From the IMG/VR virus record IMGVR_UViG_3300032782_000001, positions 372,317 through 436,316 of that record: DNA of 64,000 nt. One strand, written 5' to 3'. This document shows positions 36,388-59,048 of the stretch, piece by piece. The notes beneath the pieces were generated by a model, which made no database searches, had not been told where the DNA came from, and worked only from the letters and a program-made list of their open reading frames with translations. Within the stretch, counting starts at the first letter, position 1. Each line of letters opens with the position of its first letter. A program made the position numbers and the translations under genes.

Positions 36388-36999
36388 ATGGACGTTTATC
36401 TCGTTAGTTCTCGAAGGCTCGATTGTGCACACCAGAATGTCTACGAGACGAAAGTCGTCTGTGGGAATTTGGAATCAGCCCGTCGGGCTGCTAAGAGTCT
36501 GTGTAGCGATCTCGACGGGTTATTCAACGAAACAGTTAAGAACGTCGAGTGGGAATATGACGTTGGAGGTGATCATCCGGTCAGAGTAACCAAGACGATG
36601 CTTAACGGTCATTGTGATCTCGGTATTGAAGAACTTTGCGCAATTTCTTCTCAGATCGCTTTGGAGCATGGGTGGAAGAATGATTTCCCCACTCAGTCAC
36701 TTTTAACTGTAACTGAAATTGCAGAAGCTGTTGAGGAATTCCGTGATCATCGGGGACTGAACGAGATCTGGTACAGCCACACCGTCAAGTCCAATAACGG
36801 AAAGACGAAGACTATTTCGGAAGTCTCGGCGGATACACCAGGAGCAAAACCCGAAGGTATCCCTGTAGAACTTGGAGATGCCATTATTCGGATTTGTGAT
36901 TGGTGTGGACAAAACGCCATTGATCTCCTGACTGCAATTCGCATCAAGGTCGAGTATAATCGGACCCGACCTTTCAGGCACGGGGGTAAGGCCATTTAG
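36388..36999 (+). CDS. MazG-like NTP pyrophosphohydrolase with an N-terminal extension
   Basis: TEIAEAVEE...ELGDAIIRICD...IDL..AI..KVEYNRTRPFRHGGK. Confidence 0.85.
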   Translation: MDVYLVSSRRLDCAHQNVYETKVVCGNLESARRAAKSLCSDLDGLFNETVKNVEWEYDVGGDHPVRVTKTMLNGHCDLGIEELCAISSQIALEHGWKNDFPTQSLLTVTEIAEAVEEFRDHRGLNEIWYSHTVKSNNGKTKTISEVSADTPGAKPEGIPVELGDAIIRICDWCGQNAIDLLTAIRIKVEYNRTRPFRHGGKAI

Positions 37000-37192: not shown

Positions 37193-37450
37193 GTGGATTG
37201 GTGGAGGATGGAAGTCATCTGGGGAAATGACGAGAATCACACCCTTCTCGGGATTATGGATCTTAGACGGACCCGTTACGAAGCGGGAGAACTGGACTCA
37301 ATAATTCAAAAAATAAGTGCTTTGATGCGTGCGGAAGAGTTGAAAGAGATGGAACGAGTAGTTTCGCGACTCGTCCGTATGAAAGTCTCTGATGATGATA
37401 TCAGAAGAACACTAAACGAAGCACTCGTTCGTGATGTAATGGACACATGA
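37193..37450 (+). CDS. Hypothetical protein ending DVMDT
   Basis: 85 aa; carries the C-terminal VMES-type tag. Confidence 0.65.
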   Translation: MDWWRMEVIWGNDENHTLLGIMDLRRTRYEAGELDSIIQKISALMRAEELKEMERVVSRLVRMKVSDDDIRRTLNEALVRDVMDT

Positions 37451-38238
37451 CACTCCCGTTGAAATATCCGGAGTCCATGGTGGATGAAAAGGAAAAATTC
37501 CTGTTTGCCATCCGATTTTCTCTGGAATTTCTGATGCGGGGATATTTAGCAAAAGTAGTCGTTGGGGAACCTGGAAAGGTTATTGAAGCTGTCCAGAAGA
37601 TGGAACTTAATGATATCTGCAATTTGGCTCAGTTCTGCAAAGAAGCCCAATCTAATTCCGAAATAATGAAGGTCATCCAAAAACGCATCCTGGAATCCAA
37701 AGATGGTTTCCACATTCGTAGGCTCGCCATCGTTCCGGGTGTGAATGTGGAGTATCTTCAGTCCGTCGATTTAGATAACTGGGATGATAAATCGGGACGT
37801 TACAATTATTCAAACGTAGATTTTATTGTCAGTGCTTGGACTTACATCAGAGGACATAATTCTAAGAAACTCACAGAGTTCGTAGTTAAGCATGGCTATC
37901 CGAACACCATGTTCAATTTGTGCAGGGATGATCCGCAGGTAAATCGAATGGATGCCGCAAGATTCGTTGTGGCTAAGAAAGATCTTTACATTCTCCTTAA
38001 AATGGTCCAGGCGAGTATGATCAGTCTTCAAGAAGCAGAAGACCTAGTTGCTGAATCAGAAGACCCTGGTATTTGGTATTCCTTTGCCAAAAATTTTGAA
38101 GGGATAAACATTCCTCGACTAGAAAAATTAATGTTCGAGAAGGGACGAGATCCCTACAAATCTTGGTTCCGAGATTATATCCCGGGAGCCAATCTCATTC
38201 GAGACTGGCAAATTGTAGCAGAAGTGATGGAATCGTGA
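37447..38238 (+). CDS. Helical-repeat hypothetical protein ending EVMES
   Basis: 263 aa; ATGA overlap; carries the tag. Confidence 0.7.
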   Translation: MTLPLKYPESMVDEKEKFLFAIRFSLEFLMRGYLAKVVVGEPGKVIEAVQKMELNDICNLAQFCKEAQSNSEIMKVIQKRILESKDGFHIRRLAIVPGVNVEYLQSVDLDNWDDKSGRYNYSNVDFIVSAWTYIRGHNSKKLTEFVVKHGYPNTMFNLCRDDPQVNRMDAARFVVAKKDLYILLKMVQASMISLQEAEDLVAESEDPGIWYSFAKNFEGINIPRLEKLMFEKGRDPYKSWFRDYIPGANLIRDWQIVAEVMES

Positions 38239-38520
38239 TTATTTACAAGTCGTCTCTAACTCACCACACGACTTGATCGACACCCAACAACTCGGCTTAA
38301 TGGACAAGCCGTTATTTTGAACGTATTCACAATCTTTGCGACACGAATCAGGATCGCTGGGTGTTGATCCTTTTGCCTCAGGGCAACCAAGAACTTTCAG
38401 GTGATCGCAAGCTTCACCACAAGAAGCCGTGTCAGTGGGCTGTACGGGAACAAGGGGTGCTTCCGGAGCTGGACACCCATTGCAGCCCATAACAAGCAAA
38501 AGTAGTAGGAATCGCTTCAT
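38239..38520 (-). CDS. Cys-rich lipoprotein
   Basis: MKRFLLLLLVMGC lipobox-like; C..ACDHLKVLGC and further Cys. Confidence 0.7.
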   Translation of the reverse strand: MKRFLLLLLVMGCNGCPAPEAPLVPVQPTDTASCGEACDHLKVLGCPEAKGSTPSDPDSCRKDCEYVQNNGLSIKPSCWVSIKSCGELETTCK

Positions 38521-39398
38521 GATGCCAAGTCTCCTTGGAAGACAAGTCCGTTGGTCGGAACCCATGGGTCGTTCGCAAATCCGGACACAAACCATCCGGG
38601 GTCGAGGAGAGCATAACCACCGTCACCCCAATCTGTACCCCAAGAATTACGAATCTTAATGTTGTTCCCAATTTTGCCCATTGCCATGATACAATGTTGG
38701 CCAATGACTTTCTCTGTGATGTTCCAAGGTTCTCCTTGAGGCGGAGGAATAACCTGGTTCCCTGAAGCTTTGTAGAAAGCTTCAGTCACTGGAATACCGA
38801 AACAGACCGGATGGCGACCGCCGATTGCACTTTGAATATCGGACAGCATTCCATCCGCAATGGAATCAATACGATAATATGAATGGAGCTTATTGTTCAA
38901 AGCATACCAGGTAGCTTTGATATCAGGACGAACGTTGACTTTGTCAGGCGTATACGGCCACAAACTTTCAGGACAAATTCCAAATACGTTCATGGCTTGG
39001 AAAGCCGCCTTGACTGACATTCCCTTGTCAAGGTTTGTGAGATTGTGGATCCCGTCCACCGTCATTATGGAACGACCATTGTAATAAATTTGATTCCTGG
39101 AAATTTGAACTTGTGTCAATCCATCCAGTCCATTGCAAAGCTCAATTGCGTCGGCTGACGCGTTAGCCACGCAAGAACTTTCCCACAATTGGTTGGAAAC
39201 CTCCGTGCACCACTGTTGGAGATCTACATCACCAGCCGTAACGCTCAAAACTGGTAAAAGGTCTTTGGAAAAGATCTTATCACCGTCTGTGACGACGCTT
39301 GGCATGAATCCACCAATTTCGGTCCTTAAAATCATATCGGAATTCTCGATAAAAGCTTTTGACTGTGAAGATTCGAAACGTTTATGCTGATATGACAT
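38517..39398 (-). CDS. Papain-like (C1) cysteine peptidase
   Basis: NQ..ESSCVANA (catalytic Cys), GQHCI (His), IRNSWGTDWGDGGY. Confidence 0.9.
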   Translation of the reverse strand: MSYQHKRFESSQSKAFIENSDMILRTEIGGFMPSVVTDGDKIFSKDLLPVLSVTAGDVDLQQWCTEVSNQLWESSCVANASADAIELCNGLDGLTQVQISRNQIYYNGRSIMTVDGIHNLTNLDKGMSVKAAFQAMNVFGICPESLWPYTPDKVNVRPDIKATWYALNNKLHSYYRIDSIADGMLSDIQSAIGGRHPVCFGIPVTEAFYKASGNQVIPPPQGEPWNITEKVIGQHCIMAMGKIGNNIKIRNSWGTDWGDGGYALLDPGWFVSGFANDPWVPTNGLVFQGDLAS

Positions 39399-39737
39399 GT
39401 GAGGATCGTGAAGATCGCTGCCGGATTAGCCGGCGTGAGCTACGGTGTTCTTTCAGCTTACGCTGATAGAACCGACTCACAGAATGAATTCTTGCACCAG
39501 AAGCTTCAAAAGGAGCTAGAAGGACTCGGCTATTCTCCAGTGGAATCCATCGGAGAATGGGAAGGAGTACCGGAAAAATGCTGGGTCGTACCAAACATTA
39601 ATATTTCTGAATTTGTGGAATTGGCTCGAAGATATGAACAAGAAGCCGTTATTGTGTGCGCCCGAGGAGGAAGGCCGAGAATTTTGAAAGTCGGAGGGGT
39701 ACCGAAGCCTCCTGTTTCACGTCCTATGAGCGAATGA
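39399..39737 (+). CDS. Hypothetical protein (DUF3293-like)
   Basis: LQKELEGLGY....GEWEG.PEKCWVV...LARRYEQEAV. Confidence 0.5.
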   Translation: MRIVKIAAGLAGVSYGVLSAYADRTDSQNEFLHQKLQKELEGLGYSPVESIGEWEGVPEKCWVVPNINISEFVELARRYEQEAVIVCARGGRPRILKVGGVPKPPVSRPMSE

Positions 39738-39747
39738 AGATTGAGTC

Positions 39748-40416
39748 ATGGGTTATTACTACCGCATGCGAGCCAGGGATGTAGACAGCGCCTCTATCTT
39801 GTACAGGAGTTGGGTAGTACCCAATATGCCGGATTTCCAAGCCACTCTCTACACGGGACCCAAATCTGGCGGCAGCCCATTGGCGGATGTCACCGTAGCT
39901 GCAAAATGGAAGTCAGGAATCCCGGATAACCAAATTGCAAACTTCAGTCTTGTTGATTTTCTGTTCACCAATAGCGTGCCTTCGAATGGATCTGGTAATT
40001 TCACTGTAGGAAGTAAATTTACTCCCATCAGATCTTGTAAAGCTATCGGGGTTCGGTTTTATTGGGGAGCGGCCAATAAGGCATTGAAAATTTCAATTTG
40101 GGATGTCGGAGCTGCGTCAAGAATGACTTTTGATGGGTTCGTAACGGGAGTGGCAGGAGTCTATAGAGTCCCGTTCACCAGTATTCAAACTTTGACTCCG
40201 TTCAAGTCATACGCTGTCACTGTGTATCAAACAGATGGTGCTAATTACACTAATCAAACTAGTGTTGCCGCGGAGCCAGGATCTGAAACGACAATTGCGA
40301 GTCCATTATTTTTCTACACCAATTTCAAGTCCTTTATCGCTGGAGACGGGAACCCAACGAGCACAGCTGGCTCAGAGAGATACCCTGTAGAACCCTTACT
40401 GGTAGGAACTGGATGA
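39748..40416 (+). CDS. DUF4082-like beta-sandwich protein, paralog 1
   Basis: VGSKFTP....IGVRFYW...LKISIWD. Confidence 0.65.
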   Translation: MGYYYRMRARDVDSASILYRSWVVPNMPDFQATLYTGPKSGGSPLADVTVAAKWKSGIPDNQIANFSLVDFLFTNSVPSNGSGNFTVGSKFTPIRSCKAIGVRFYWGAANKALKISIWDVGAASRMTFDGFVTGVAGVYRVPFTSIQTLTPFKSYAVTVYQTDGANYTNQTSVAAEPGSETTIASPLFFYTNFKSFIAGDGNPTSTAGSERYPVEPLLVGTG

Positions 40417-41093
40417 CCATTTATTACAAAATGAGAGGTCGGGATGTGGATGCGCCATCCCTTACTTTCCGGTCATGGGTAGTCGCCAATATACCTGACT
40501 TGACTGGAGCACAGTATACAGGACCCAAGTCTGGCGGAAGTGCACTTGCGGATGTGTATATATCGAGCGTCAGAGACGATGGGGGTATTCAGACAGACAC
40601 TGTCCCTGACTTTAGTCCCGTGAACTTCATGATGGCAAACAGTAACCCTGTTTCCAACTCATCATTAAATCAAGGAAGCGGCACTGCCTTCCGAGTCACT
40701 AGAGCTTGTAGCTTGCTCGGTATTCGATTCTACTGGGCAGTTTCTTCTAAAACTGTCAAGCTTTCTCTTTGGAATTTGAACACAAGTGCCCGTGTAAATT
40801 CTATCACGGTGTTCGTTCCAACCGCGGGTCTATACTCCTTCTATTTCTCTTCCCCCATAAGCCTCACCCCATTTGTCCAATACTCAACCGTAGCGTGGGA
40901 GACTGACTCTGGCGCTTTCTACACAACGCAGACCAGCCTTCCAACTGTTCCGTCAGTTCCATTTTTCTCAGGTCCATACCTTATTTGGACCAATTTCAAA
41001 ATCTATGGGACTAATGATACGGTTCCGAATACAACAGCTGGCTCTGAAAATTATCCAACAGAGCCGATCATTATAGGGAACACTCAGCCATAG
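40413..41093 (+). CDS. DUF4082-like beta-sandwich protein, paralog 2
   Basis: GTAFRV....LGIRFYW...VKLSLWN; shares its N-terminus with paralog 1. Confidence 0.65.
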   Translation: MTIYYKMRGRDVDAPSLTFRSWVVANIPDLTGAQYTGPKSGGSALADVYISSVRDDGGIQTDTVPDFSPVNFMMANSNPVSNSSLNQGSGTAFRVTRACSLLGIRFYWAVSSKTVKLSLWNLNTSARVNSITVFVPTAGLYSFYFSSPISLTPFVQYSTVAWETDSGAFYTTQTSLPTVPSVPFFSGPYLIWTNFKIYGTNDTVPNTTAGSENYPTEPIIIGNTQP

Positions 41094-41660
41094 TCATCGG
41101 TGGAAACCGAATAAATCCACGATTTCATCCCATCCGACTACTCGACGAAGATGGGATTCTCGGCGATTATATGGAGTGTCCCAAAGCAATGCGTGGCCGT
41201 TAGGATGATGTAAACCCCATTTCTCCACGTTGTCCGGTTTATCATCGACTAGTCCATGGCCTGCGACCGCATATTTCCGGAAACAGTGAATGATTTCGTC
41301 CTGACGAGCATTAAAATGATGAGATAACCATTCATTGCGTTCCTGCATCCATGTTTTACTAATATGGTGTGGAGTAGTAACAAATAATATCTCCACATCT
41401 GGAATAGAGCGGAGCTTTTCTACGGCTTTTTGAGCCTCAGGAAAAGGCTTCAAAGAAGAAGCGAATCCGGGCTCCGCAATCCCGTTATTACAAGCGGCCT
41501 TCATTTCGGCAGTGGGAAGAACATCAGTCACATCCCAGGTAGTGAATGCACTCATTTCCAATCGGATTCCAAAGAGATCATTGATGAGATCTCGGGCTGC
41601 CTCGTGGAAGTCACCTAAAACTCCATCGACATCCAACAAGAGACGCCTATGTAAACTCAT
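41094..41660 (-). CDS. 5'(3')-deoxyribonucleotidase (NT5C, HAD family)
   Basis: LLDVDGVLGDF (DxDxV), VTTP, LVDDKPDN, LWDTPYNR. Confidence 0.88.
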   Translation of the reverse strand: MSLHRRLLLDVDGVLGDFHEAARDLINDLFGIRLEMSAFTTWDVTDVLPTAEMKAACNNGIAEPGFASSLKPFPEAQKAVEKLRSIPDVEILFVTTPHHISKTWMQERNEWLSHHFNARQDEIIHCFRKYAVAGHGLVDDKPDNVEKWGLHHPNGHALLWDTPYNRRESHLRRVVGWDEIVDLFGFHR

Positions 41661-42175
41661 GACGACATTACGACTTCGACGCAGCAAGAGCGCCATAGTT
41701 CAACAAGATCTTCCAATTCCATGTCTTTGGCTGGACCAATCAGTGCGGTTCTGATCATTTCTACCCCTCTAGCATGCTCTTCAGATCGACGCCTGGTTGC
41801 CCGTTTCTCGATGAGGACCATGGCTTTCCCATAAAGCCCATTGGTGGGTGCTTCTTGGATCGCTTTGTCAGAGCGTTCTCTGATTTCCGCCAGAAGCTTA
41901 TCCATGGCGGCTCTCACGGATTTGGGTTTCAGGACAAAACGTTTGAATCGAGGATTGTACTGATGAATGATCTTCAGTTCAAGCTCCCTATCTGAATAGG
42001 AACAAGATACCCATTTCATTTTCGGGAGTCCGACGTCCAAAAGAACGGATGTGTGATAGAATTGGGAAAGATCTTGATTCGCTTGAATGTTGTTCGGAGG
42101 AACAAAGCGTACGCGTGCTAAAATAATCTTCGTTTGGGATAGCTTCTGAATCAGGAATTCGGCAGTTTTTGCCAT
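41657..42175 (-). CDS. Hypothetical protein ending VVMSS
   Basis: 172 aa; carries the tag. Confidence 0.65.
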   Translation of the reverse strand: MAKTAEFLIQKLSQTKIILARVRFVPPNNIQANQDLSQFYHTSVLLDVGLPKMKWVSCSYSDRELELKIIHQYNPRFKRFVLKPKSVRAAMDKLLAEIRERSDKAIQEAPTNGLYGKAMVLIEKRATRRRSEEHARGVEMIRTALIGPAKDMELEDLVELWRSCCVEVVMSS

Positions 42176-42211
42176 CTCAGATCAATACATTCCTGGTACC
42201 GTGGAGATACG

Positions 42212-43324
42212 ATGATCACGATTCTGGACATAGGCTGGGGAACGTATAAACAATATGAAGGGCCCTTTTTCAGGGGGGTCATTCCTTATTCTCTCGGGGC
42301 CACATATACGGAAGATCAACGGACGATGGCAGTTATCACCGCCACGGAAGGTGGACATTACGATGCCATTAACATGTATGATAGATGCATTCTTTCCTCT
42401 GGTCTGATTCAATGGTGTGAAGCTGGTCAATTTTCAGTTTCGGATATGCTTGGAGCCGTGGCAGAAATGGATTCTTCTGCATTGGCTCCTTTGACTCAGT
42501 ATTTGACGAGTATTGGCTTGAGCTTCAAGAAGAATGACAAAGGCAGGTGGCGATTCTTCTTCCCCGACGCACGAGGGGAAGTAGACAGGCTGGATGAACA
42601 ACAACAACTCTTCCTGTTCAAGTCCAATGGACAGCAGGGGACTTGGGACGATTCTTCTAAAGAATATGCTAAAGGTTGGGCTGCTGCCGTCGCCAGCGTA
42701 TTCCAAAGTACGATCGCTCAGCAAGCTCAAATCCGGTATACGATCCCAAGGCTCATGGGATTTGTCTTGCCTCAAGCAATGACTACGCTATGGGGAACCG
42801 AATCTGGTACTCCTACTGGCCCAGGGGACTGGAGAGCTGCCGCTAGAGCCGCATATTTGTCGTTTGCTGCAAATAACCCGACTTATGCAAACCAATCATT
42901 GCAGTCATACGTATCGGAAGCTGGAGCGGCGCAATGGAATTCAGATTGGGTTGTAGGTATGTTACAAGCTCTGACCTTTGATCCTGGAGTCATCATTTAT
43001 CCCGCCAGATATGATGCCATCAGGCCCGTGATCGAGAAGCTCTACGGCGTAGATCTTCCTGATTTTGATCAAGAATTGAAGGATTGGCATGATGGCAATG
43101 CCAATCGTGTTCCCGGTTATCCTCCGTCAGGAATGCATACGACGAAAGAAATTCAGCAAGCTCTCATCAAGCTCGGATTTGATATTGGTCCAACGGGGGC
43201 TGACGGTCAGTATGGTCCAAAAACTAAGGATGCCGTTATGGTGTTTCAGAAACTCCACGGACTCAAGGCCGACGGTATTGTTGGGGTAAATACCTGCGCG
43301 GCCCTGTTCGCATTGTCGTCATGA
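42212..43324 (+). CDS. Putative endolysin (lysozyme-like N-terminus, PG_binding_1 C-terminus)
   Basis: C-term IQQALIKLGF..G..GADGQYGPKTKDAVMVFQKLHGLKADGIVG.NT; N-term TEGG.YDAIN.YD...SSGLIQW. Confidence 0.8.
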   Translation: MITILDIGWGTYKQYEGPFFRGVIPYSLGATYTEDQRTMAVITATEGGHYDAINMYDRCILSSGLIQWCEAGQFSVSDMLGAVAEMDSSALAPLTQYLTSIGLSFKKNDKGRWRFFFPDARGEVDRLDEQQQLFLFKSNGQQGTWDDSSKEYAKGWAAAVASVFQSTIAQQAQIRYTIPRLMGFVLPQAMTTLWGTESGTPTGPGDWRAAARAAYLSFAANNPTYANQSLQSYVSEAGAAQWNSDWVVGMLQALTFDPGVIIYPARYDAIRPVIEKLYGVDLPDFDQELKDWHDGNANRVPGYPPSGMHTTKEIQQALIKLGFDIGPTGADGQYGPKTKDAVMVFQKLHGLKADGIVGVNTCAALFALSS

Positions 43325-43521
43325 GCAATTCACTGGATTCCAAGACCGTAAAAGAAATTCTGGAAGGACCAGACGACGAGCTTCTGCATGTGGTTCTAAT
43401 CCTGTCCAAAGAGTCTCGGAAGCGAATGAACGCCAAAATGGCGGACCCGGAATACAGATCCAAACTCAGTGATGGTATGCAGAAGATTTTCGCTTCTAGA
43501 AATCCAGCTCCAAAGCTTTAA
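43321..43521 (+). CDS. Small hypothetical protein
   Basis: ATGA-coupled to the endolysin. Confidence 0.5.
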   Translation: MSNSLDSKTVKEILEGPDDELLHVVLILSKESRKRMNAKMADPEYRSKLSDGMQKIFASRNPAPKL

Positions 43522-44020
43522 CGGGAGCAGTACGCTCAAATTCCTCTACGATTCTCTGTTCCAATATAGGACGCATAAAATTAGCAGCCTGATCCCATGC
43601 TTCAATAGTCTGTTGGAGACGGTCGGGTGATACTCCGTCCCAGTTTTCAAGCAATGCTTTTGTAGCTTCTAGCACATCGCGGAGAGTATCTGCCACATCC
43701 GGTGGCGGGATTCGTTCCCACTTCGGAGCGAGAAGCTCAAATCGGACCCAGTTCTTTTTCTCTGAACCGTCGTAAGGCTCATGCCAGTATTGGAGATTGG
43801 CTTCTGCCGGTTCCCCATTTTGTTTCAACGTAGGATTGATGCGGACCAATCCAGAAATACGAACAAAATCACCGATTTTGAGTTTGGATCCGGGTTCAAT
43901 CTCAAAGTTGTATGCTTGATTAAGCATAGCACATTCGACCGTAACCACCCATCGGGTCTGGCCTTCCGTCAGGAACCGTACTCGACCTTCACGGGGGGCT
44001 ACACTGAATGTTTCAAGCAT
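43496..44020 (-). CDS. Hypothetical protein
   Basis: 174-aa ORF. Confidence 0.55.
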   Translation of the reverse strand: MLETFSVAPREGRVRFLTEGQTRWVVTVECAMLNQAYNFEIEPGSKLKIGDFVRISGLVRINPTLKQNGEPAEANLQYWHEPYDGSEKKNWVRFELLAPKWERIPPPDVADTLRDVLEATKALLENWDGVSPDRLQQTIEAWDQAANFMRPILEQRIVEEFERTAPVKALELDF

Positions 44021-44132
44021 GTGTCAAGAATACATCGGAGTCATATTAGATCCAGCCCAAATCGGGTCCGCCTTAATAATACAAAGATCTCATGACCAAA
44101 TCTGGTCGCATTCTATTGTCGAATATTATTAG

Positions 44133-44372
44133 ATGGAATGCCATATTTTGTGGAGTCCGGAGCCAGGAGTCTGCAGCTCATGCGGACGCAGGTCATCCCA
44201 AGTCCGTAGGTTCACTACTGGGACCACACATGAAATGTATTGCTTTCCTTGTTGGAACGGGGCACAAGAATCGTGTCTCGTGAGTAGTCTGGATTGGGAA
44301 GAAAACGAGAACGTGATCTTCCGAATCGGAGGAATAGAGCGTGGAACCGCACAAGGAGCTGTCTGCCATTGA
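44133..44372 (+). CDS. Small Cys-rich protein
   Basis: CSSC..YCFPC. Confidence 0.45.
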   Translation: MECHILWSPEPGVCSSCGRRSSQVRRFTTGTTHEMYCFPCWNGAQESCLVSSLDWEENENVIFRIGGIERGTAQGAVCH

Positions 44373-45039
44373 GAAGTTCCGACCGGATCTGAAAAGCGGT
44401 CCACACGCTTATTTTTCCAAAGCTTTAGAATTCGCTCGAGCGAATTATTCTGAACAGATGGAGGAAATTGCCTCCGTCCAATTCCAAAAAGTTTCTCAGG
44501 AATATTTCTTCAGAGAGTATATCTGGGTAGTCCACGCAACAGGATTCTCGGCTAAGGCTGTCGGCAAATTCATGCCCAAGCTAATTCAAGCATACGGTCC
44601 ATGGAATTGTCTTCCAGATCTTCCGTTCCCCCAAGCCTTCGAACGAGTGAAGATTGTCTGCAATAATCCACAGAAATCTAAGGCTATTTATGCAATGGCC
44701 AAACTCATGTGCGACGAAATGTTCCGTAAAGATGGAACCGCAGTTCCATGGGAGGAATTCCGAAGAAACCGGCTTTCTTCACCTGAATTATTGGCGAAAC
44801 TTCCCTATGTGGGGAAAGTGACATGTTTCCACCTCGGCAGGAACATCGGGTTATTGGAATGTGTGAAGCCTGATCTTCATCTCATTCGAATGGCAGAATA
44901 TTGGGGCTTCAAGAATTGTGAAGAGATGTGTCGCGCGGTCAGGCCAGAAGGAATGCCACTCGGGATCGTGGACCTTGTTTTTTGGTACGCAGCGTCTACG
45001 TTTGGAACTTTGGAAGTAAGGAAGGATGGCCAGCGCTAA
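44341..45039 (+). CDS. HhH-GPD-like DNA glycosylase
   Basis: LAKLPYVGKVTCFHL (HhH) followed by VKPDLHLIRMA (conserved Asp). Confidence 0.7.
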   Translation: MEPHKELSAIEKFRPDLKSGPHAYFSKALEFARANYSEQMEEIASVQFQKVSQEYFFREYIWVVHATGFSAKAVGKFMPKLIQAYGPWNCLPDLPFPQAFERVKIVCNNPQKSKAIYAMAKLMCDEMFRKDGTAVPWEEFRRNRLSSPELLAKLPYVGKVTCFHLGRNIGLLECVKPDLHLIRMAEYWGFKNCEEMCRAVRPEGMPLGIVDLVFWYAASTFGTLEVRKDGQR

Positions 45040-45467
45040 CTATCCATGACTTCATAGATAGGCCACAGATTAATAATTAAATCTGCCGCATCTTCAGAGC
45101 TGATATCCCTGAAATTCGGATACTCTATCCGGAAATTTGGTTGAGCTTTGTCATAAATTTGGGTTTTAATTTGCTCTGGCTTCCCGATAGGATCGGGAAG
45201 CGATAGGTGAATCCCCCAAATTTGCTTCCATTCTAAATGACAGATTTCGAATTCAAATGTGAGTTCGAGCCCGCCTAGAAGACAAATGGCTTCGTCATTA
45301 TTATTTTTCTCTCCTTTAAGAAAAACTCTGGATGAAATCCAATCCCACCGTTCCTTCACAATCTTGCCAGCCAAAAGTCGGATTTCAGGGTCCAATTCGC
45401 TAATATCGATCACTGGTTCTCCATTATTCAGGACTCCATCACTTCCCAGATAATATTCATCGGACAT
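45036..45467 (-). CDS. Hypothetical protein ending EVMDS
   Basis: 143 aa; carries the tag. Confidence 0.65.
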   Translation of the reverse strand: MSDEYYLGSDGVLNNGEPVIDISELDPEIRLLAGKIVKERWDWISSRVFLKGEKNNNDEAICLLGGLELTFEFEICHLEWKQIWGIHLSLPDPIGKPEQIKTQIYDKAQPNFRIEYPNFRDISSEDAADLIINLWPIYEVMDS

Positions 45468-45670
45468 TCTTCAGGCTCATCCCCCACCGGAACAGTGGAG
45501 TCACACCATTCACAATGACCCAAACCGTTAGCTTGACGTAAAACACGATGGCCTTTCCCAAAAGCAATCTCATCCAATTTCTTGAAAATAAGTTCGTCTT
45601 CAGCCGATTTAATTTGTTCTCGCGCAGATATAACTGCCGCAGAATGTATAGGCAAAGGTTGACGTGCCAT
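45428..45670 (-). CDS. Small Zn-binding protein ending EVMES
   Basis: H..HCEWC...C; carries the tag. Confidence 0.6.
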   Translation of the reverse strand: MARQPLPIHSAAVISAREQIKSAEDELIFKKLDEIAFGKGHRVLRQANGLGHCEWCDSTVPVGDEPEECPMNIIWEVMES

Positions 45671-46641
45671 GCGAGACTGTACGGTCGGTCGTGCGTCACC
45701 ACATCTTCTGTTTCAGTGGGTACTCGGGCGTCGGCAAAGATGAATGCGCCGGGCATCTCGTTCGAACGAGACAGGCAATTCACACTGGGCTTGCAGACCC
45801 TGCCAAACGCCATATGGCAGATCTCTACGGATTCACCAAAGAACAGCTCTTCGGACCGAGTCATTTTCGCAATGCAGGCGATCCGAGATATCCGAAGAAT
45901 GTTATTCGAAATCTCGGATTCCAATACTTTGATGGTCAAGTAGAGTTGCGAGATGTTGTAGGAGAACTTCGTGATGGCAAACGCTATATCATCGTAGAAA
46001 CAAGAAATCTCCCTGGAACAGAACCAGTTCCAGGGAAGCCAGGTTGGCCGGCTGTTCCGCGGCAACCTCTCCAACTCGGGAAAGCTCGATACTTCATCGA
46101 AAACGATCATCCGAATTTCTTCTTGTCGCCTCGTGAGGCGCTGCAACTCTACTGCAATCTCATGAACGATCTCTATCTCGATTCATGGATTCGCAAGGGT
46201 ATTGAAGTTCATCAACAACTTGCCGAAATCCATCAGCAAGATGGAAAGGAAGTCTTCATGCGTCATAGTTACGATCGCATGATGGGCGTAATCGTGAATG
46301 ACGTGCGGGAAGGTACCAATTGGAAAACGTCAGATGGGAACTTCTTTACATGCTTTTCTGATTTCCGCCACCGACACGAAATCTCCCTCGTCAGAGCGTT
46401 CAAAGCTGAGTATACTCCAGTCGTGATTCGCGTGAAGCACCCGAAGATTACAATGCCCCCATACGATCATCGTTCAGAGACGGAACAAGCTAGTATTCCG
46501 GATTCTGCATTCGACTTCGTCATCGATAATGACGGGAGTCTCCAAGAGCTCTACACAAAGGTCGAGAAGATCGTAGAAACGGTCATTGCATCTGACGGTT
46601 GGAGGCTTCGAGGGCGGAGCTTATATGAGGAGGCCTCGTGA
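45664..46641 (+). CDS. Deoxynucleoside monophosphate kinase (T4 gp1-like) with an internal insertion
   Basis: FSGYSGVGKD P-loop, ADPAK, SPREALQ, WIR, SDFRHRHE, H.SE, DFVIDNDGSLQEL. Confidence 0.85.
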   Translation: MPCETVRSVVRHHIFCFSGYSGVGKDECAGHLVRTRQAIHTGLADPAKRHMADLYGFTKEQLFGPSHFRNAGDPRYPKNVIRNLGFQYFDGQVELRDVVGELRDGKRYIIVETRNLPGTEPVPGKPGWPAVPRQPLQLGKARYFIENDHPNFFLSPREALQLYCNLMNDLYLDSWIRKGIEVHQQLAEIHQQDGKEVFMRHSYDRMMGVIVNDVREGTNWKTSDGNFFTCFSDFRHRHEISLVRAFKAEYTPVVIRVKHPKITMPPYDHRSETEQASIPDSAFDFVIDNDGSLQELYTKVEKIVETVIASDGWRLRGRSLYEEAS

Positions 46642-47684
46642 CGATTGATATTGAGAAACTCAAGGCAGTCACCGACATTTATTGCCATGCATCATGCCCG
46701 GACGGCCTATCATCGGCAATGCTTTGTGCAGCAGCATTTTCAATGCTCGGGAGCAAGCCGAAGATTTGGTTCATCCAGTATGGAACCGAGAAGATGCTGA
46801 AGATGGAGGCCAGACCAAACCAGCTCTTCGTCGACATCACGCCTCCTCTCGAGCGATGGGAAGAATGGAAGGAACACTCACCCATTGTTCTTGACCATCA
46901 CAAGACTGCTCGGAAGGCCACGGAAGGACTCGGAGGCATTTACGGGACCGAGACCCAATCCGGAGCTTCACTGGCTTACGAACATGTCTTTGAACCATTG
47001 TTCAAAGACGACTTTAGTGAGAGTGAGTACGCTGATTGGAAAAACCTCGCCGAGCTCGCACCCATTCGGGATACCTGGCAAGATTCACATGAGCGCTGGG
47101 TTGAAGCTACTGGAATGGCTCACGCGCTCATGCAGAATAACCCTTATGAACTCGTGGATGCGGCCCGTGAAGGGAAAGTAGACTTCCAAGAGCTCTTCAA
47201 GCAGGCGAAGCGCGAAGGAGATCGGATTGATTTCAAGGCCAGAAAATTGGCCGAAAACGCTTATTTCGATCAGATCCAGTGTCTCGGAGTGAATTACCTT
47301 CTCGGGGTATTTAATTGCACTGAGAAGCTCATCTCGGATGCTGCGAACACGCTCCTAAGGCATGGGTGCGACATCGCTGTTGCCTATTTCATGCTTTGTG
47401 AAGACGGAGGTCCGAAGATTTCAATCTCCATCCGAACCAATGGAGAGATTTCAGCAGAAATCTTAGCCGCTCATAACAAGGGCGGAGGACATGACAAAGC
47501 TGCGGGCTTCAGGATTGACGATGGTCTGAATGCCTCAGTCAAGTCAATTGTTCAAGTCATCAAGCAGTCTGTCTGGAATACTAAAACCCAAAGTGTGAAG
47601 CCTGATGACGGACGAGAGCGTAAAACCAAAGACATGGTTTTGCAATCTTTGCAAGAGGCTAAGCCAGGTAAGAAACGGAGCTAA
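46638..47684 (+). CDS. DHH/DHHA1 phosphoesterase
   Basis: YCH..CPDG, FVDIT, VLDHH, GGGHDKAAGF. Confidence 0.88.
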   Translation: MTIDIEKLKAVTDIYCHASCPDGLSSAMLCAAAFSMLGSKPKIWFIQYGTEKMLKMEARPNQLFVDITPPLERWEEWKEHSPIVLDHHKTARKATEGLGGIYGTETQSGASLAYEHVFEPLFKDDFSESEYADWKNLAELAPIRDTWQDSHERWVEATGMAHALMQNNPYELVDAAREGKVDFQELFKQAKREGDRIDFKARKLAENAYFDQIQCLGVNYLLGVFNCTEKLISDAANTLLRHGCDIAVAYFMLCEDGGPKISISIRTNGEISAEILAAHNKGGGHDKAAGFRIDDGLNASVKSIVQVIKQSVWNTKTQSVKPDDGRERKTKDMVLQSLQEAKPGKKRS

Positions 47685-47707
47685 GCCTCTTGTCGCCCGG
47701 TTAGGCG

Positions 47708-48619
47708 ATGCGCCGCCATACGAGTGCCGTAGTCACGCCTGACGACATTCGACAGTATGTCAAAGGTAAGAATAAGAGCATCCGTGTAACGGATGATAAG
47801 GATGGGGCTGTCAACGTCGAGTCAGCTCAATTCGATTTTAGTTTCAAACCCAAAAATTTCAAATGGCACGTCCGAATCGAAGCAACGGACGATCCTTCTG
47901 ACGCAGACGAAAAAGTCACGCCCGATCCGGTGAAATTCATCGCCGGGTTCCTTGGGGCTGGTGTTCCAGGCGGTGAACATTTCGAGAAAATGTCTGCGGG
48001 TCCAGATGAATTTTCCGGACTCCTCAGGCATCTAGCCTCTCGGGTGGAATCTGGTTCTCTTGGGCCCAGGAAGCTTAGCGCCATGCTAAGGCGTGCCGCT
48101 GTCATCCCTAATATCAACCTTCTCCGTCGCATCGTGGCAGCTGTAGCCAGGACAGCGGCCGGTCAAGAGACTTCTCTTGCGGAAGTCAAAAAGTTACAAG
48201 AGGAGATGAAAAATAAGGGTTGGAAAGTCAAAGAGACTGAGACTGACGCTGGACTGCCTGAACTTACTGTCGATGTCTCCGGAATCTACGAGGCCAAAAT
48301 CCGAGCTGAAAGCATCTCTTACGCCTATGAGATGAAGACTCTTGGATTCCCCGAATTCGACGAAAAGGGCGACACGGAAGACCCTATTTCAACGATTCGA
48401 GCATATGCCAAGAGGGACGATATAAGTACGGCTTTGGACGAAAAGAAAAAGAGAGAAGAACTGGAAACCGGAAGGACCGAACCTGCCCCCGGCACCGTTC
48501 CCTCCCACGGTCTACCAGCTCTCCAACCTCAGAAAACGATCAAGGACGAAGAGCTAGGAGACACCGCCCGTCCTGAACCAATCCGGACCGACAAGACCGC
48601 CCCCGCTAAGCGTAAGTGA
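47708..48619 (+). CDS. Hypothetical protein with an internal repeat
   Basis: 303 aa; the segments around D..G.T.DP occur twice (DEKVTPDPVKFI, DEKGDTEDPISTI). Confidence 0.6.
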   Translation: MRRHTSAVVTPDDIRQYVKGKNKSIRVTDDKDGAVNVESAQFDFSFKPKNFKWHVRIEATDDPSDADEKVTPDPVKFIAGFLGAGVPGGEHFEKMSAGPDEFSGLLRHLASRVESGSLGPRKLSAMLRRAAVIPNINLLRRIVAAVARTAAGQETSLAEVKKLQEEMKNKGWKVKETETDAGLPELTVDVSGIYEAKIRAESISYAYEMKTLGFPEFDEKGDTEDPISTIRAYAKRDDISTALDEKKKREELETGRTEPAPGTVPSHGLPALQPQKTIKDEELGDTARPEPIRTDKTAPAKRK

Positions 48620-48644
48620 TTCCTACCATCACGTACATGATTAT

Positions 48645-49031
48645 ATGAACTGGGAAAACCAGGCAAGGTCCCATGTCGAGTCCGGACTACTTGAAATCCA
48701 TCTCAAGCCCGAAGAATCTTACGAGCTTTGCCAGGTTATTCAGACCCGGATCCGTCAAATCTCCCATCGTGATATTCCGCAGGAAATCGATTTCCGATTG
48801 GTTTCCACACTTGCACGATTCGGTTGCAGTTTGACTAGGTCCAATTCTTTGCAGGATTTGTCCTACGAAGATGTTACTGAGTTACTCAAACTGTTTTGGA
48901 GCCCCAAAATTCGGGAAGTAGAAAAAGAACTCCAATTCGCCCTTGCGGTATTTGTTTTGAGGCAAACCGGTCCTATTGACCCCGTATGGCAAGATCAGAT
49001 TTCGAAAGAAATGATTGACATTCTCGGTTAG
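48645..49031 (+). CDS. Hypothetical protein
   Basis: 128-aa ORF. Confidence 0.55.
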   Translation: MNWENQARSHVESGLLEIHLKPEESYELCQVIQTRIRQISHRDIPQEIDFRLVSTLARFGCSLTRSNSLQDLSYEDVTELLKLFWSPKIREVEKELQFALAVFVLRQTGPIDPVWQDQISKEMIDILG

Positions 49032-49312
49032 CTTTCCATCACATCCACAATGATCACCATCTCTGGAATGAGAGAATCCAGAGGAAACCAATATTTTTCC
49101 CAGCCGATGGCAAACGATGAGTGAATTTTGAGGAGAACGAAACTCGGATCGGTCTCCGTTATTTCCCAAGAGAAATGTTCGATTTGAAGCAATAACTTCA
49201 TCTCATACAGAGTTCTCTCAATAAGTTGGCCTGTCAGTGGATTCTTCCACCCTCCTAGCCCGCCAACATTTGCACTAGCGAGTGATTTGAAAAGGGCGGT
49301 TTCAGTGCTCAT
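49028..49312 (-). CDS. Hypothetical protein ending DVMES
   Basis: 94 aa; carries the tag. Confidence 0.65.
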   Translation of the reverse strand: MSTETALFKSLASANVGGLGGWKNPLTGQLIERTLYEMKLLLQIEHFSWEITETDPSFVLLKIHSSFAIGWEKYWFPLDSLIPEMVIIVDVMES

Positions 49313-49590
49313 GATTCCATGACTTCAATTACGGGAATCATGTGAGGACGAAGTTCAGCCAAACCGAACTTCCCCGTTTCGGTAGTGGACTCCGCAAAAC
49401 CCCACGTCCAGTGGATTTCCACATAGCCTTCGCCTGCCAGCTCACTAACATTCTTCCAACTGGTTATGGTATTGACTGACTTCATGACAGTCAAAATAGT
49501 TGTCACACGTTCTACGGCATCGCGCCAAGGAGAAGATCCAACATCACATCGAGCAAGATGGATCTTCATTTGGATGGATGTCACAATCAA
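49309..49590 (-). CDS. Hypothetical protein ending EVMES
   Basis: 93 aa; carries the tag. Confidence 0.65.
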   Translation of the reverse strand: MIVTSIQMKIHLARCDVGSSPWRDAVERVTTILTVMKSVNTITSWKNVSELAGEGYVEIHWTWGFAESTTETGKFGLAELRPHMIPVIEVMES

Positions 49591-49621
49591 GACAATACAC
49601 CCATTAAACTGACGAATCAGG

Positions 49622-50020
49622 CTATTTCGCCAATATTCTAACTATCGTCCCAAATAGTGTTTCGAAATTAATGGGCTTTGCGAGCCGCTCATCTGGAAGT
49701 ATTGGAGTTAGATTGCGAGCAGAAGACGAAATTTTGATGGTTTTCTCATTGGCTGCCGTCATTAAAATGATCGGAATATTGCACATTTCTGACTGACGGA
49801 TTCCAGCCAAAAAGGCCATTCCATCCATTCTTGGCATCATTACGTCAAGAAGAATAAGGTCCGGCTTCGGACCGGGTGCATAAAGAAGATTAAATGCTTC
49901 AATTCCATCCGCCGCTTCAGATGTCACATAGCTATGCTCGTTCAAAGCCATGCAAATAGTTTCCCTCAGATCCGTGTCATCTTCCACTACAAGGATCCGG
50001 ATTTTTTCCATTTGGTCCAT
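49622..50020 (-). CDS. Stand-alone response regulator receiver (CheY-like)
   Basis: ILVVEDD, DLILLDVMMPRMDG, IILMTA, AKPI. Confidence 0.93.
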   Translation of the reverse strand: MDQMEKIRILVVEDDTDLRETICMALNEHSYVTSEAADGIEAFNLLYAPGPKPDLILLDVMMPRMDGMAFLAGIRQSEMCNIPIILMTAANEKTIKISSSARNLTPILPDERLAKPINFETLFGTIVRILAK

Positions 50021-50110
50021 CCCATGTTGAATTACACAAATGCAAAATTTTTACAAATAACTTGAAACTGTGACTATGTCTAGGACGCTGAGTGTGTGAA
50101 CAAGTAATCG

Positions 50111-50923
50111 TTATACCTGTCGACAAAAAACGTCGGCGAATGCTACGAAATTAGGGGATCCGGCAGGTGGCACAGCAAAAGTAACATGCGTGAATGCTTG
50201 CCGGAATCCCGGCTCAGAAAGAATGTCCCGGAAAATGCCTGCAACGACTTCCGGATCATTACCGAAAACACCGCACCCCCAGGCGCCGAGAACCGCTACG
50301 CCTGATTGAAGTGCCATCGCTGTCAAGACATGACGTGCTCGTTTACGGAAGACTTTCACTACTTGTGTACAGGCAGACGGCGGAAGTGCACTTGCATTAG
50401 GCGCAGGACATGTGACGACCGACAGAAAATACGGACGGTCAACCGTCTGATAGTCAGACGTACGGAAGAACGGAACAGACGGAGAAACCGCCAGCGCGTC
50501 CGAATAAAGAGGACTATTCGTCGCCCGATGTGACTCGTAAAGCTGTGGCACCGTTTCAAGACAAGAGAAAAGAACGGACTGACGACAAAGATCTTCTTCC
50601 TGCGCCTTGGCACCTCGGAGGAAACCACCACCCGGATGCTTTCCTGAAGCAAAATTCAGAAGACACGGCTCTTCACCGAGATGAGAAAGCCTAAAACCGG
50701 CGTCTGAAGAAGTTTCCGACGTCACCTCGACGAAAAGCCTGGAACAACGAACCGGAATCTCTTGAGTAGAAAGAGTATCCGGAAAATGAACAATAGTGCC
50801 CTGGATCGCTTGTCGAACTTCCGCCTCAATGAGAACGGGGCCGCGCGGTCCGAGATATCGACCAGACGTGGCAACTTCGACGTTCTCTTGGGCAATCTTG
50901 ATGTAATTCACCCAGCACCCCAA
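50111..50923 (-). CDS. TIGR02452-family microbial PARG-like ADP-ribosylhydrolase
   Basis: LNFAS..HPGGGFL.GA.AQEEDLCRQS (GGG-X6-QEE), VLGAWGCGVFGNDP. Confidence 0.9.
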   Translation of the reverse strand: MGCWVNYIKIAQENVEVATSGRYLGPRGPVLIEAEVRQAIQGTIVHFPDTLSTQEIPVRCSRLFVEVTSETSSDAGFRLSHLGEEPCLLNFASGKHPGGGFLRGAKAQEEDLCRQSVLFSCLETVPQLYESHRATNSPLYSDALAVSPSVPFFRTSDYQTVDRPYFLSVVTCPAPNASALPPSACTQVVKVFRKRARHVLTAMALQSGVAVLGAWGCGVFGNDPEVVAGIFRDILSEPGFRQAFTHVTFAVPPAGSPNFVAFADVFCRQV

Positions 50924-51324
50924 TTCTTACACGGCCATTGCTCTGAATTCACGAACCAAGGAGCGAAATCATTCCACTCCAAAACCAAATCAATGGCCGC
51001 AATAGCCTCCCGAAACTTGGTCAAACGTTGCTGTTGCTCCGGCGTCATTTCATTCCAAGAAGGAGCGTGGGGAAACTGAGAAAGGTCAAGATGAGCCGGA
51101 GCCGTTTGAACATCCTGGTGCGAGCCGGCGCTTTCGCCTTTCACGCTCCCGGTTCCTACGTTGTTCCATTGACTCTTCGGTGTGAGTTGTGCCGAGGGTG
51201 GGCGGGCAACGGTGACAACGACGTACCGAACTTTCCTTGTTCGGCGACTGACGCTCCACCTCATGGCCGCACTCAAGTACGTCGTAAAACCGCCCGTCCT
51301 TCTCGACATTGCCTTTGACCTCAC
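50908..51324 (-). CDS. Hypothetical protein
   Basis: 138-aa ORF; competes with the overlapping 51086..51370 ORF. Confidence 0.4.
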   Translation of the reverse strand: MRSKAMSRRTGGFTTYLSAAMRWSVSRRTRKVRYVVVTVARPPSAQLTPKSQWNNVGTGSVKGESAGSHQDVQTAPAHLDLSQFPHAPSWNEMTPEQQQRLTKFREAIAAIDLVLEWNDFAPWFVNSEQWPCKNWGAG

Positions 51325-51402
51325 GACTTGGAGCCCTCCATCCGCCGGTATGGACAGGACTTCTTGACATGGAAAAAATGATACATCAAGGGTGCCGCAA
51401 AA

Positions 51403-51786
51403 TTATGACATCATGACCCGCCAAACCGTCAAAAGACTTTCCCCCTCCGGATACCCACGAATTCGAGCCTCCAAAATTTCCCGAAGCCTGCCCGCTTCAA
51501 CTTCAAACTCATCGACGGAAAGATGACGCGAAGCGACGCTCATGCCGGGCTCGTGGAACGGGAAAATAAAAGGCGTTCCGGCCGTCTCAATGGCCCGCGG
51601 GAGTGCCGCCATCATTTCCAAATCTTCCAAGACGTAGAAATAGTAAAGAAGATGGCCCTCTGCTTCCGCACGCTGGCGTAGCTCCCGAAACGGAACGACG
51701 AGCGCTGAAATTAATTTCTTCCTGCCCTCATCTGTCGCCATGCTGTGACGAATTAGCGCCTCCTTGGCCGACCTCTCCAACCTCAT
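51403..51786 (-). CDS. Hypothetical protein ending RVMMS
   Basis: 127 aa; carries a variant of the tag. Confidence 0.6.
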   Translation of the reverse strand: MRLERSAKEALIRHSMATDEGRKKLISALVVPFRELRQRAEAEGHLLYYFYVLEDLEMMAALPRAIETAGTPFIFPFHEPGMSVASRHLSVDEFEVEAGRLREILEARIRGYPEGESLLTVWRVMMS

Positions 51787-58119: not shown

Positions 58120-58190
58120 CGTCGTCACCTCCGACCTGGAATACGACAAGAGGGACCGGACTTGCGCCCGGTCCCCTGGGTCCTGGTGGG

Positions 58191-58409: not shown

Positions 58410-58458
58410 CCCGTCACCTCCGGGGCAGAATACGCCCCGGAGCGCGGAATTTGCGGCT

Positions 58459-58695: not shown

Positions 58696-58746
58696 CTCGT
58701 CACCTCCAGCCAGGAATACGGCCGGAGGTGCGAGATTTACAGGCCT

Positions 58747-58962: not shown

Positions 58963-59048
58963 TGTCGTCACCTCCGACCAGGAATACGACGGAGAACGCA
59001 GGATTTACAAGTCTGAAGCGGCGCGCGGCGGATTTCTGCTCTGCCCGG

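Follow-up and report, generated by a model that had tools for sequence, protein, structure and literature searches.

An eight-residue C-terminal tail on unrelated small proteins of an uncultivated huge-phage clade, a candidate address peptide

The DNA analysed here, a window of 64,000 nucleotides, is the final 64 kb of the Joint Genome Institute (JGI) contig Ga0335082_10000001, which is the uncultivated virus genome IMG/VR UViG 3300032782_000001 (436,316 bp); a European Nucleotide Archive (ENA) assembly holds a 337-kb contig near-identical to this 436-kb contig. The window encodes PurZ, ThyX, ribonucleotide reductase, an exonuclease V/Dda-like helicase, NT5C, a deoxynucleoside monophosphate (dNMP) kinase and a DHH phosphoesterase, together with poly(ADP-ribose) glycohydrolase (PARG), a receiver domain, a papain-like peptidase and a peptidoglycan (PG)-binding lysin-like protein, and its replication and nucleotide-metabolism genes are of phage type. 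Among these genes lie small open reading frames (ORFs) whose predicted products end in the same short peptide, V-x-x-V-M-E-S (Table 1). An earlier note on this DNA had listed eight of them and proposed that their ends form a C-terminal tag read in trans. All eight ORFs were confirmed with their ends and tails and encode proteins of 80-263 aa. The note underestimated the scale of the tag, and we regard the tail as a candidate address peptide of one huge-phage clade.

None of the eight tagged window proteins matched Pfam or PHROGs, and in an all-against-all BLASTP comparison of the window proteins the tagged proteins were alike in the tail alone. The description of the eight as otherwise dissimilar stands as far as BLASTP similarity is concerned, with the qualification that 45428-45670 shares one small zinc-ribbon family with a ninth tagged ORF, 6274-6483, which lies outside the span of the note. 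The 263-aa protein is an ORFan: a word-index search of 5.8 billion proteins returned it alone, and no relative was found in the PDB. The enzymes recognisable in the window (ribonucleotide reductase, helicase, PurZ, ThyX, NT5C, kinase and PARG) carry no tag. The regular expression [VI]xx[VI]Mx[ST] at the chain end matched 9 of 99 crude window genes, and shuffling of residues within proteins gave 0.0035 expected matches per window (Poisson P = 2e-28); for the window, the comparison with a shuffled background that the note had proposed as a check is in its favour. One of the 418 other six-frame ORFs of the window also matched. For the match of the doubtful ORF 46269..46403, with 0.015 expected among non-gene ORFs, both coincidence and an overlooked overlapping gene are conceivable. 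The tagged gene 41657..42175 shares 4 nt with the beginning of the NT5C gene, which makes co-transcription of the pair likely, and 49309..49590 sits downstream of the receiver-domain and PARG genes.

Table 1. Tagged ORFs and other features of the window. Positions are those of the 64-kb window.
Feature	Position	Strand	Tail	Tag codons	Remarks
Tagged ORF, 85 aa	37193..37450	+	LVRDVMDT	37424-37447	ATGA stop/start overlap with next tagged gene
Tagged ORF, 263 aa	37447..38238	+	IVAEVMES	38212-38235	3' end convergent with lipoprotein and peptidase genes
Tagged ORF, 172 aa	41657..42175	-	CVEVVMSS	41660-41683
Tagged ORF, 143 aa	45036..45467	-	PIYEVMDS	45039-45062	Convergent with 44341-45039(+), 4-nt overlap
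Tagged ORF, 80 aa	45428..45670	-	IIWEVMES	45431-45454	Small zinc-ribbon family (CxxC ... C at -12)
Tagged ORF, 94 aa	49028..49312	-	IIVDVMES	49031-49054	Convergent with 48645-49031(+)
Tagged ORF, 93 aa	49309..49590	-	PVIEVMES	49312-49335	ATGA overlap with next tagged gene
Tagged ORF, 127 aa	51403..51786	-	TVWRVMMS	51406-51429
Ninth tagged ORF, 69 aa	6274..6483	-	LVRNIMHT		Zinc-ribbon family
Untagged family member	48645..49031	+	EMIDILG		240-kb relative tagged (..DDIMTS); 393-kb relative ..DWTMRS
DHH/DHHA1 phosphoesterase, untagged in window	46638..47684	+			Orthologues: 274-kb ..LLVEEVHAL (variant tag), 393-kb ..AILDVMKE
44-aa ORF fitting the regular expression	46269..46403	-	TITPIMRS		Antisense to dNMP-kinase gene; doubtful, probably not a gene
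PurZ-type adenylosuccinate synthetase	30514-31701	+			PHROG 1211, E 5e-54
ThyX, DUF488 protein, 203-aa ORF without Pfam/PHROG match	32799-34136, 35738-36364, 36388-36999
Lipoprotein ORF	38239-38520	-			After C1 peptidase gene; lipobox L-V-M-G-C
Papain-family (C1) cysteine peptidase	38517-39398	-
Tandem paralogue, 222 aa	39748-40416	+			Weak DUF4082 match
Tandem paralogue, 226 aa	40413-41093	+			Weak DUF4082 match; 43% identity with preceding paralogue
PG-binding lysin-like gene	42212-43324
Receiver domain (132 aa) and PARG (270 aa) genes	49622-50923	-
Repeat-element block	56000-64000				Copies at 58120-61468, 61484-63423, 63752-63798
tRNA-Lys(ttt)	59047-59120	-

A scan of IMG/VR with a degenerate DNA pattern for V-x-x-V-M-E-S-TGA returned 118 stretches, with more than 25 matches in the 436-kb genome and several each in 427-kb, 393-kb, 193-kb and 240-kb contigs. 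Counts for the 436-kb genome cover the 173 kb of it that were examined, and application of the regular expression to the retrieved pieces gave about 100 tagged ORFs there. One continuous stretch of 41.2 kb (record 31,374-72,596) has 49 tagged ORFs, 46 of them on one strand, and tagged genes account for 43% of its bases; a scan of the densest array for sigma-70 promoters and terminators gave counts at the level of shuffled sequence and no timing information. In JGI and other metagenomes, the DNA pattern was found in 116 stretches, of which 54 have at least two tagged ORFs, with a G+C fraction (GC) of 0.36-0.70, and one belongs to a 531-kb contig. In total, dozens of environmental contigs supplied 378 non-redundant tagged ORFs, whose median length is 101 aa. 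This scale has no known precedent in phages.

When the tail was removed, the 378 ORFs fell into 293 BLAST clusters with 248 singletons, and these tail-less clusters, together with the all-against-all BLASTP comparison, rule out paralogy as the source of the shared tail. Pfam matches were obtained for 2 of the 212 tagged ORFs scanned and PHROG matches for 6 of 112. Tagged proteins are nearly all ORFans of 60-260 aa and are soluble (a transmembrane-like segment occurs in 4%), and their genes are interleaved and co-oriented in operons with nucleotide-metabolism, ligase and similar genes. Rare tagged enzymes were found outside the window, a dehydrogenase-like ORF and a GIY-YIG endonuclease joined to a zinc-ribbon module that bears the tag. 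The latter ORF, L146:8188-9489(+) on the 362-kb contig 3300037608_000209, encodes a GIY-YIG homing endonuclease with NUMOD3-like repeats and then a C-terminal 73-residue module, which has a homologue in a free-standing tagged zinc-ribbon protein and terminates in ..ARQVMES. Either two genes have fused here, or a homing endonuclease gene has been inserted and is read through into a tagged gene.

Word-index homology searches with three proteins returned the queries alone and were uninformative on tag retention. Orthologues with 28-60% identity in the protein body keep the tail, and in some copies Met is replaced by His. The earlier note had named free loss of the tag among homologues as an argument against it; families traceable between genomes keep it, with occasional decay or loss, of which the untagged window gene 48645..49031, with a tagged relative in the 240-kb genome, is an example. 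A profile of four tagged members of one family found 1654 homologues among 1.8 billion representatives. Most of these end before the last helix or run into another domain, and the terminal helix is present only in the closest homologues, which end VMES, VMES, VMEA, VQES, VQEA, VLET, VLGD and VHAQ. The graded endings indicate that few substitutions on an existing helix can create the tag, with VMES being fixed in the tag-rich phages. This family, that of L032:144-575 (model m8e1d74f141d7), is a widespread unannotated beta-rich domain of about 130 aa in environmental sequences, without a Pfam family, and in a Foldseek comparison its model matched no PDB entry significantly (best E 0.026, TM 0.27).

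The consensus of the tail is phi-[V/I]-x-x-[V/I]-M-[E]-[S>A,T]-COOH. Position -8 is mostly I, L or V, position -7 is V in 80% and I in 13%, and at -5 roughly half of the tails have an acidic residue. Position -4 is V in 80% and I in 18%, position -2 is E in 69%, and the last residue is S in 88%, A in 6% and T in 5%. Met at -3 reaches 100% in a set collected by a search that demanded it, and relatives sometimes carry His, Gln or Leu there. Upstream of -8 the sequence is nearly random, except that position -12 or -9 weakly favours Cys and positions -11 and -10 weakly favour acidic residues. Of the copies of the motif, 104 closed the chain exactly, where chance expects 0.01, and 3 lay inside it, where chance expects 3.4, so the chain end itself belongs to the signal. 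The hydrophobic positions -8, -7, -4 and -3 are spaced as one face of an alpha-helix, and AlphaFold2 agreed in both cases tried. For the family of L032:144-575 (42 sequences; predicted local distance difference test score (pLDDT) 90, predicted template modelling score (pTM) 0.83), a terminal helix was predicted at residues 131-143 of 144. For the 80-aa zinc-ribbon protein, which was modelled at low confidence (mean pLDDT 61), the tail was helical at residues 70-79 with pLDDT below 50.

Judged from the codons, selection acts on the peptide and not on DNA or translation. The earlier note had reported Val as GTA, GTG and GTC, Ser as TCG, TCA, TCC, AGT and AGC, and all three stop codons in its eight genes, and this holds; in the larger set, all four Val codons occur at both Val positions, Ser is encoded by TCN and AGY, all three stops are used, and nothing is conserved past the stop codon. 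Among the tagged genes, 74% stop at TGA and 51% have TCA-TGA, by which stop and following start overlap as ATGA. However, 46 of 109 tagged genes lack a closely coupled gene downstream, 27 of them with convergent ends and 19 before gaps of more than 30 nt, and in some convergent pairs both genes are tagged. Head-on ends had been reported at 45036 and 49028 and are correct, and the gene end at 38238 is convergent too. The varying codons and convergent ends remove the explanation by a Shine-Dalgarno (SD) sequence or translational coupling, which the note had also excluded, despite the likeness of GAG-GTG-ATG to an extended SD sequence; a ribosome-binding-site imprint or DNA repeat is rejected on the same grounds. 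An integron-like or cassette-boundary repeat was likewise rejected, since synonymous positions vary and conservation ends at the stop.

In the sequences searched, the tail is restricted to one clade of uncultivated huge phages. Six-frame ORFs of 77 other viral loci (1.25 Mb, from the peptidase query) gave 6 relaxed matches. The stricter pattern V-x-E-V-M-E-S-TGA had 11 hits in 163 kb of the 436-kb phage and 34 scattered single hits, none clustered, in 596 Gb of bacterial and archaeal DNA (185,579 genomes); these cellular controls indicate that the tail copies no widespread cellular protein end. When ATG was replaced by CAR in the stricter pattern, 4 hits were obtained across all IMG/VR, and a third tag type V-Q-E-S was rejected on this count. 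Cultured relatives were not found, as 50,697 phage records gave no megablast or tblastn match except for the PG-binding domain.

A second version of the tag was found in the sister contig 3300037851_001277 (274 kb, GC 0.65), which shares synteny with the window. The PurZ proteins of the two are 66% identical, and ThyX, 232-aa and 303-aa proteins, DHH, kinase, NT5C and lysin-like genes are common to both; in a tree of the lysin-like protein, the 274-kb genome joins the tagged 393-kb and 240-kb genomes with support 100/99. No VMES tail was present in the 79 kb examined of this genome. Instead, 11 of its ORFs, all of high G+C at third codon positions (GC3), carry a variant tail, eight of the form V-D-x-[VI]-H-[DAE]-L (VVDAVHAL, VVDEVHDL, RVDRIHDL, VVDQVHDL, IVDEVHEL, NVDRVHDL, LVDAVHDL and TVDEVHDL) and three looser ones (LVEEVHAL, LVDVVHDD and VVGAVHDH). 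The carriers include a member of the zinc-ribbon family and the DHH phosphoesterase. The 180-aa ORF at 9478-10020(-), which ends VVDEVHDL, adjoins the NT5C and lysin-like genes as 41657..42175 does in the window, and sequence similarity between these two ORFs was not detected. A scan for the variant pattern gave multiple hits in the 274-kb contig only, the 72 remaining stretches being single hits in other contigs. In the variant both Val positions are kept, and positions -3, -2 and -1 change together in many unlinked genes, with CAC for ATG. Such a concerted switch is expected from a pair of tag and receptor, and it points to a lineage-specific receptor that is therefore probably phage-encoded.

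In our view the tail is probably an address or docking peptide that the genome encodes at the C-terminus of its carriers and that one common receptor, most likely itself encoded by the phage, reads in trans. The tail would form a two-turn amphipathic helix with its hydrophobic residues at -8, -7, -4 and -3. Behind these come a polar residue, in most cases Glu, and a small final one (Ser, seldom Ala or Thr) with the free carboxylate. Selection would have placed it on several hundred small soluble accessory proteins, mostly unrelated, in one huge-phage clade, and the common putative receptor would have co-evolved with it, reading VMES in most lineages and VHDL in one sister lineage. The label may address proteins to a common phage-built assembly, either for loading into the virion and co-injection or for recruitment to an intracellular scaffold or compartment. 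This purpose is the most speculative part of the proposal; we favour addressing to an assembly, in the manner of the T4 capsid-targeting sequence and encapsulin cargo-loading peptides, ahead of timed destruction. Five lines support a peptide read in trans, namely its strictly terminal position, the free choice of synonymous codons, the convergent gene ends, the approximately 290 unrelated families with retention in orthologues, and the switch in the sister genome, and they strongly support the core of what the earlier note had claimed; the sequence rules of ssrA, PDZ ligands and EEVD, to which the note had likened the tail, do not apply to it. A wider proposal, in which co-evolving receptor and eight-residue label form a phage-encoded sorting system that sends at least 100 fast-evolving effectors per genome to one destination, the virion (for co-injection) or an intracellular phage assembly, with at least two naturally orthogonal labels (VMES and VHDL), is a real possibility that we put forward tentatively.

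Several points weigh against an address peptide with its own receptor. Neither the two candidates examined nor the further parts of the genome that were walked yielded the receptor. The first candidate was a Cdc48/VAT-like AAA+ ATPase of 501 aa (L024:5018-6520(-), record 251-272 kb), which lies beside tag arrays and has one AAA domain (closest solved relatives VAT/p97 D2, E 1e-48) and, N-terminal to it, a unique region of 220 residues. Between the 436-kb and 240-kb genomes it is 62% identical, where the lysin-like protein reaches 37%, and it ranks with the most strongly conserved proteins of the phage group (55-62% identity in genomes of GC 0.39-0.66, with relatives in L141-L151). However, relatives with 55-61% identity are present in six loci without tags within 10 kb on either side, including the VHDL genome (56%), and a role as tag-specific reader is conceivable but unsupported, because the ATPase occurs also without VMES tails. 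A PTH2 peptidyl-tRNA hydrolase and a nucleoside hydrolase are encoded near the ATPase gene. The second candidate, the papain-like peptidase of the window, has the signature Gln, Cys, His and Asn-Ser-Trp; it was rejected as a tag-specific processing enzyme, as its 163 relatives are spread over many viral contigs that carry no tags, although a part as reader is conceivable for it too. The earlier note had proposed to test whether a gene of the tetratricopeptide repeat (TPR), PDZ or ClpX-adaptor type accompanies the tag. An exact-protein walk along the contig met PP2C, RtcB, NT5C, PLD and PTH2 genes and nothing receptor-like, and no TPR, PDZ or ClpP-type gene was seen in the pieces examined. In addition, the terminal helix that was modelled with high pLDDT in one family could pack on its own domain and would then not be free. 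Operons with nucleotide-metabolism and ligase genes suggest early or middle expression, which fits virion loading less well and leaves a degron or an intracellular recruitment signal fully viable, and we know of no precedent for virion loading with more than 100 different cargo proteins per genome. The tagged proteins themselves are predicted from genes alone. No capsid or terminase gene was seen in the genome pieces examined, and viral status therefore rests on IMG/VR and the phage-type gene content.

Among other explanations, a C-terminal degron comes closest, and we consider it unlikely. An AAA+ unfoldase or protease of phage or host would recognise the tail, and the entire set of small takeover proteins would be short-lived, be cleared at a given time or pull bound host targets into degradation. 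The strictly terminal motif with its small last residue resembles ssrA-type signals, the tagged genes are co-oriented with early/middle-type genes, and the highly conserved AAA+ ATPase stands beside tag arrays in both the 436-kb and the 240-kb genome. Known bacterial C-degrons, however, are non-polar, unlike the acidic position -2 of the tail; the ATPase gene is also found at the tagless loci and in the VHDL genome, no partner protease gene was seen next to it, and a helical tag directly after folded elements such as a zinc knuckle would be a poor site for initiation of unfolding. It is distinctly less likely that the tail is a short linear motif by which all tagged proteins dock on a single conserved hub of the host, for example RNA polymerase, the ribosome, the sliding clamp or a chaperone. 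Clamp-binding and PCNA-interacting peptide (PIP)-box tails are terminal docking peptides common to many unrelated proteins, and the presence of the same VMES tail on contigs of widely different GC would fit a universally conserved host site. Against this, the motif fits no known hub-binding consensus, the scattered hits in cellular genomes show that no cellular family ends in this way, so that the tail is not a mimic of a host tail, and the wholesale switch to VDxVHDL within the clade would be easier with a phage-encoded partner.

A role in cis or between copies, as a helix cap or a stabilising or self-association element of small fast-evolving proteins with no dedicated receptor, seems improbable to us. 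A generic folding aid needs no invariant Met, fixed distance from the end or fixed last residue across approximately 290 folds, nor would it be limited to one phage clade or switch together to His and Leu in a sister genome, even though the tail is predicted to be helical and continuous with the preceding structure and the weak Cys (-12/-9) and acidic (-11, -10) preferences suggest coupling to the domain in some families. We give very little credence to an imprint of nucleic acid or translation, whether left by an SD or re-initiation signal that serves the following gene, by a site of recombination where cassettes end or by an effect of the nascent peptide on termination. The sequence GAGGTGATG does resemble an extended SD sequence, and the excess of TGA and TCA-TGA with ATGA overlaps and the many tight same-strand arrays are in line with such an imprint; yet third codon positions are free, Ser alternates between TCN and AGY, convergent ends and gaps are frequent, conservation is absent downstream of the stop, and the variant lineage has CAC for ATG while both Val are kept. 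An address peptide read by a common receptor remains our preferred reading.

We group the tail, as a candidate, with terminal address peptides; it follows the sequence rules of none of the known terminal signals considered. In phage T4, the internal proteins IPI, IPII, IPIII and Alt are diverse, fast-evolving anti-defence proteins that share only the capsid-targeting sequence (CTS), which addresses them to the scaffolding core and also carries foreign proteins there (PMC3012670). As in the present case, a short peptide is the sole common feature of diverse small phage proteins; the CTS, however, is N-terminal, comprises about 10 residues, is cut by the prohead protease at L/I-x-E and occurs on few proteins per genome. 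The tail lies at the extreme C-terminus of about 100 or more proteins per genome, has another sequence and is known only at the gene level, and thus has neither the position nor the cleavage site of a CTS. Encapsulins have an HK97-fold shell akin to phage capsids, and a short peptide at the C-terminus is enough for unrelated cargo to be loaded into it (PMC8229669). Encapsulin cargo-loading peptides, and encapsulation peptides of microcompartments, resemble the tail in being C-terminal on unrelated cargo, and between systems the peptide varies together with the shell. Encapsulin peptides follow a Gly/Ser/Leu-rich consensus and are bound in extended form. They serve one to a few cargos encoded beside the shell gene, and the consensus phi-V-x-x-V-M-E-S does not follow their rule; no capsid-like or shell gene was present in the tagged-gene neighbourhoods examined, where the arrays lie among nucleotide-metabolism genes.

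The resemblance to ssrA, PDZ ligands and EEVD is one of analogy only. Degrons of the ssrA type, which are recognised by ClpX/ClpA, need a free alpha-carboxylate and a small last residue and act on any carrier protein, but their non-polar LAA is added by transfer-messenger RNA (tmRNA), whereas the tail is gene-encoded with an acidic -2 (E 69%) and Met at -3 and does not obey the C-motif-1 rule; ARAGORN found no tmRNA in the window. A PDZ ligand or substrate of a tail-specific protease has a hydrophobic last residue, whereas VMES tails end in Ser, Ala or Thr, although the VHDL variant does end in Leu. The TPR carboxylate clamp binds the acidic E-E-V-D-COOH, which differs from V-M-E-S, and the pieces examined have no TPR gene. 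Peroxisomal targeting signal 1 (PTS1, SKL-COOH), the proteasomal HbYX motif and clamp-binding tails (PIP box, T4 gp45 binders) also bring unrelated proteins to one receptor pocket. Of these, PTS1 and HbYX must stand at the very C-terminus and keep its carboxylate free, and clamp-binding tails are often C-terminal with no such requirement. Their readers (TPR domain, alpha-ring pocket and clamp cleft), sequences and organisms differ, and none of their consensus sequences fits phi-V-x-x-V-M-E-S; the sliding-clamp consensus, Q-x-x-[LIM]-x-x-[FY][FY] or QLxLF, has a Gln and an aromatic pair that are not conserved in the tail. Closest in scale and in kind of protein are the type IV secretion effectors (for example of Dot/Icm), hundreds of unrelated, mostly ORFan proteins per genome with a common C-terminal signal for one machine. 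Their signals are a loose compositional bias over 20-30 residues and not a fixed octapeptide, and they need a secretion apparatus, none of which was seen in the pieces examined. The note knew of no description of the tag, and we also found no such tail in the literature searched, to which a review of jumbo phages from 2026 and an overview of comparative genomics from 2021 belong.

The window has other features apart from the tag. With its PurZ-type adenylosuccinate synthetase gene, beside which the genes of ThyX, a DUF488 protein and a 203-aa ORF are placed, the 436-kb phage probably replaces adenine by 2-aminoadenine (Z genome); a related 193-kb genome (L136) encodes adenylosuccinate lyase. 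The stand-alone response-regulator receiver domain and the microbial-type PARG are encoded in one strand block with three tagged genes, and the PARG suggests defence against ADP-ribosylating host systems. The papain-family peptidase has intact catalytic motifs and no signal peptide, and the short lipoprotein ORF that follows it has an o-spanin-like look. Both are near the PG-binding lysin-like gene, and the three genes may form a lysis cluster, in which a C1 peptidase would be unusual. Towards the contig end, GC rises to 0.60-0.67, and an element of 50-60 nt recurs there at least 16 times, on both strands and at intervals of 200-500 nt. Read in the gene sense, the element has a conserved upstream box, then a strong SD sequence (GGAGGTGA) and then ATG, and it looks like a repeated promoter or 5' leader before many short genes, all of which lack the VMES tail. 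Because a relative of one ORF of this block occurs in the 393-kb genome, the block probably belongs to the phage and not to the host.

The tag is the first shared, testable property of several hundred unannotated 'dark matter' proteins of huge phages, and it would define its carriers as one functional class with a single pathway. It offers a simple metagenomic marker for the phage clade and a way to find arrays of start-of-infection or accessory genes. The VMES and VHDL versions suggest pairs of tag and receptor, which could become orthogonal tools for loading or recruiting proteins. If the receptor is found, the tail would represent a new route of protein addressing in phages with about 100 or more clients per genome, a scale otherwise known only for the secretion of bacterial effectors. 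If the tail does serve sorting, phages would have in it their counterpart of a secretion signal.

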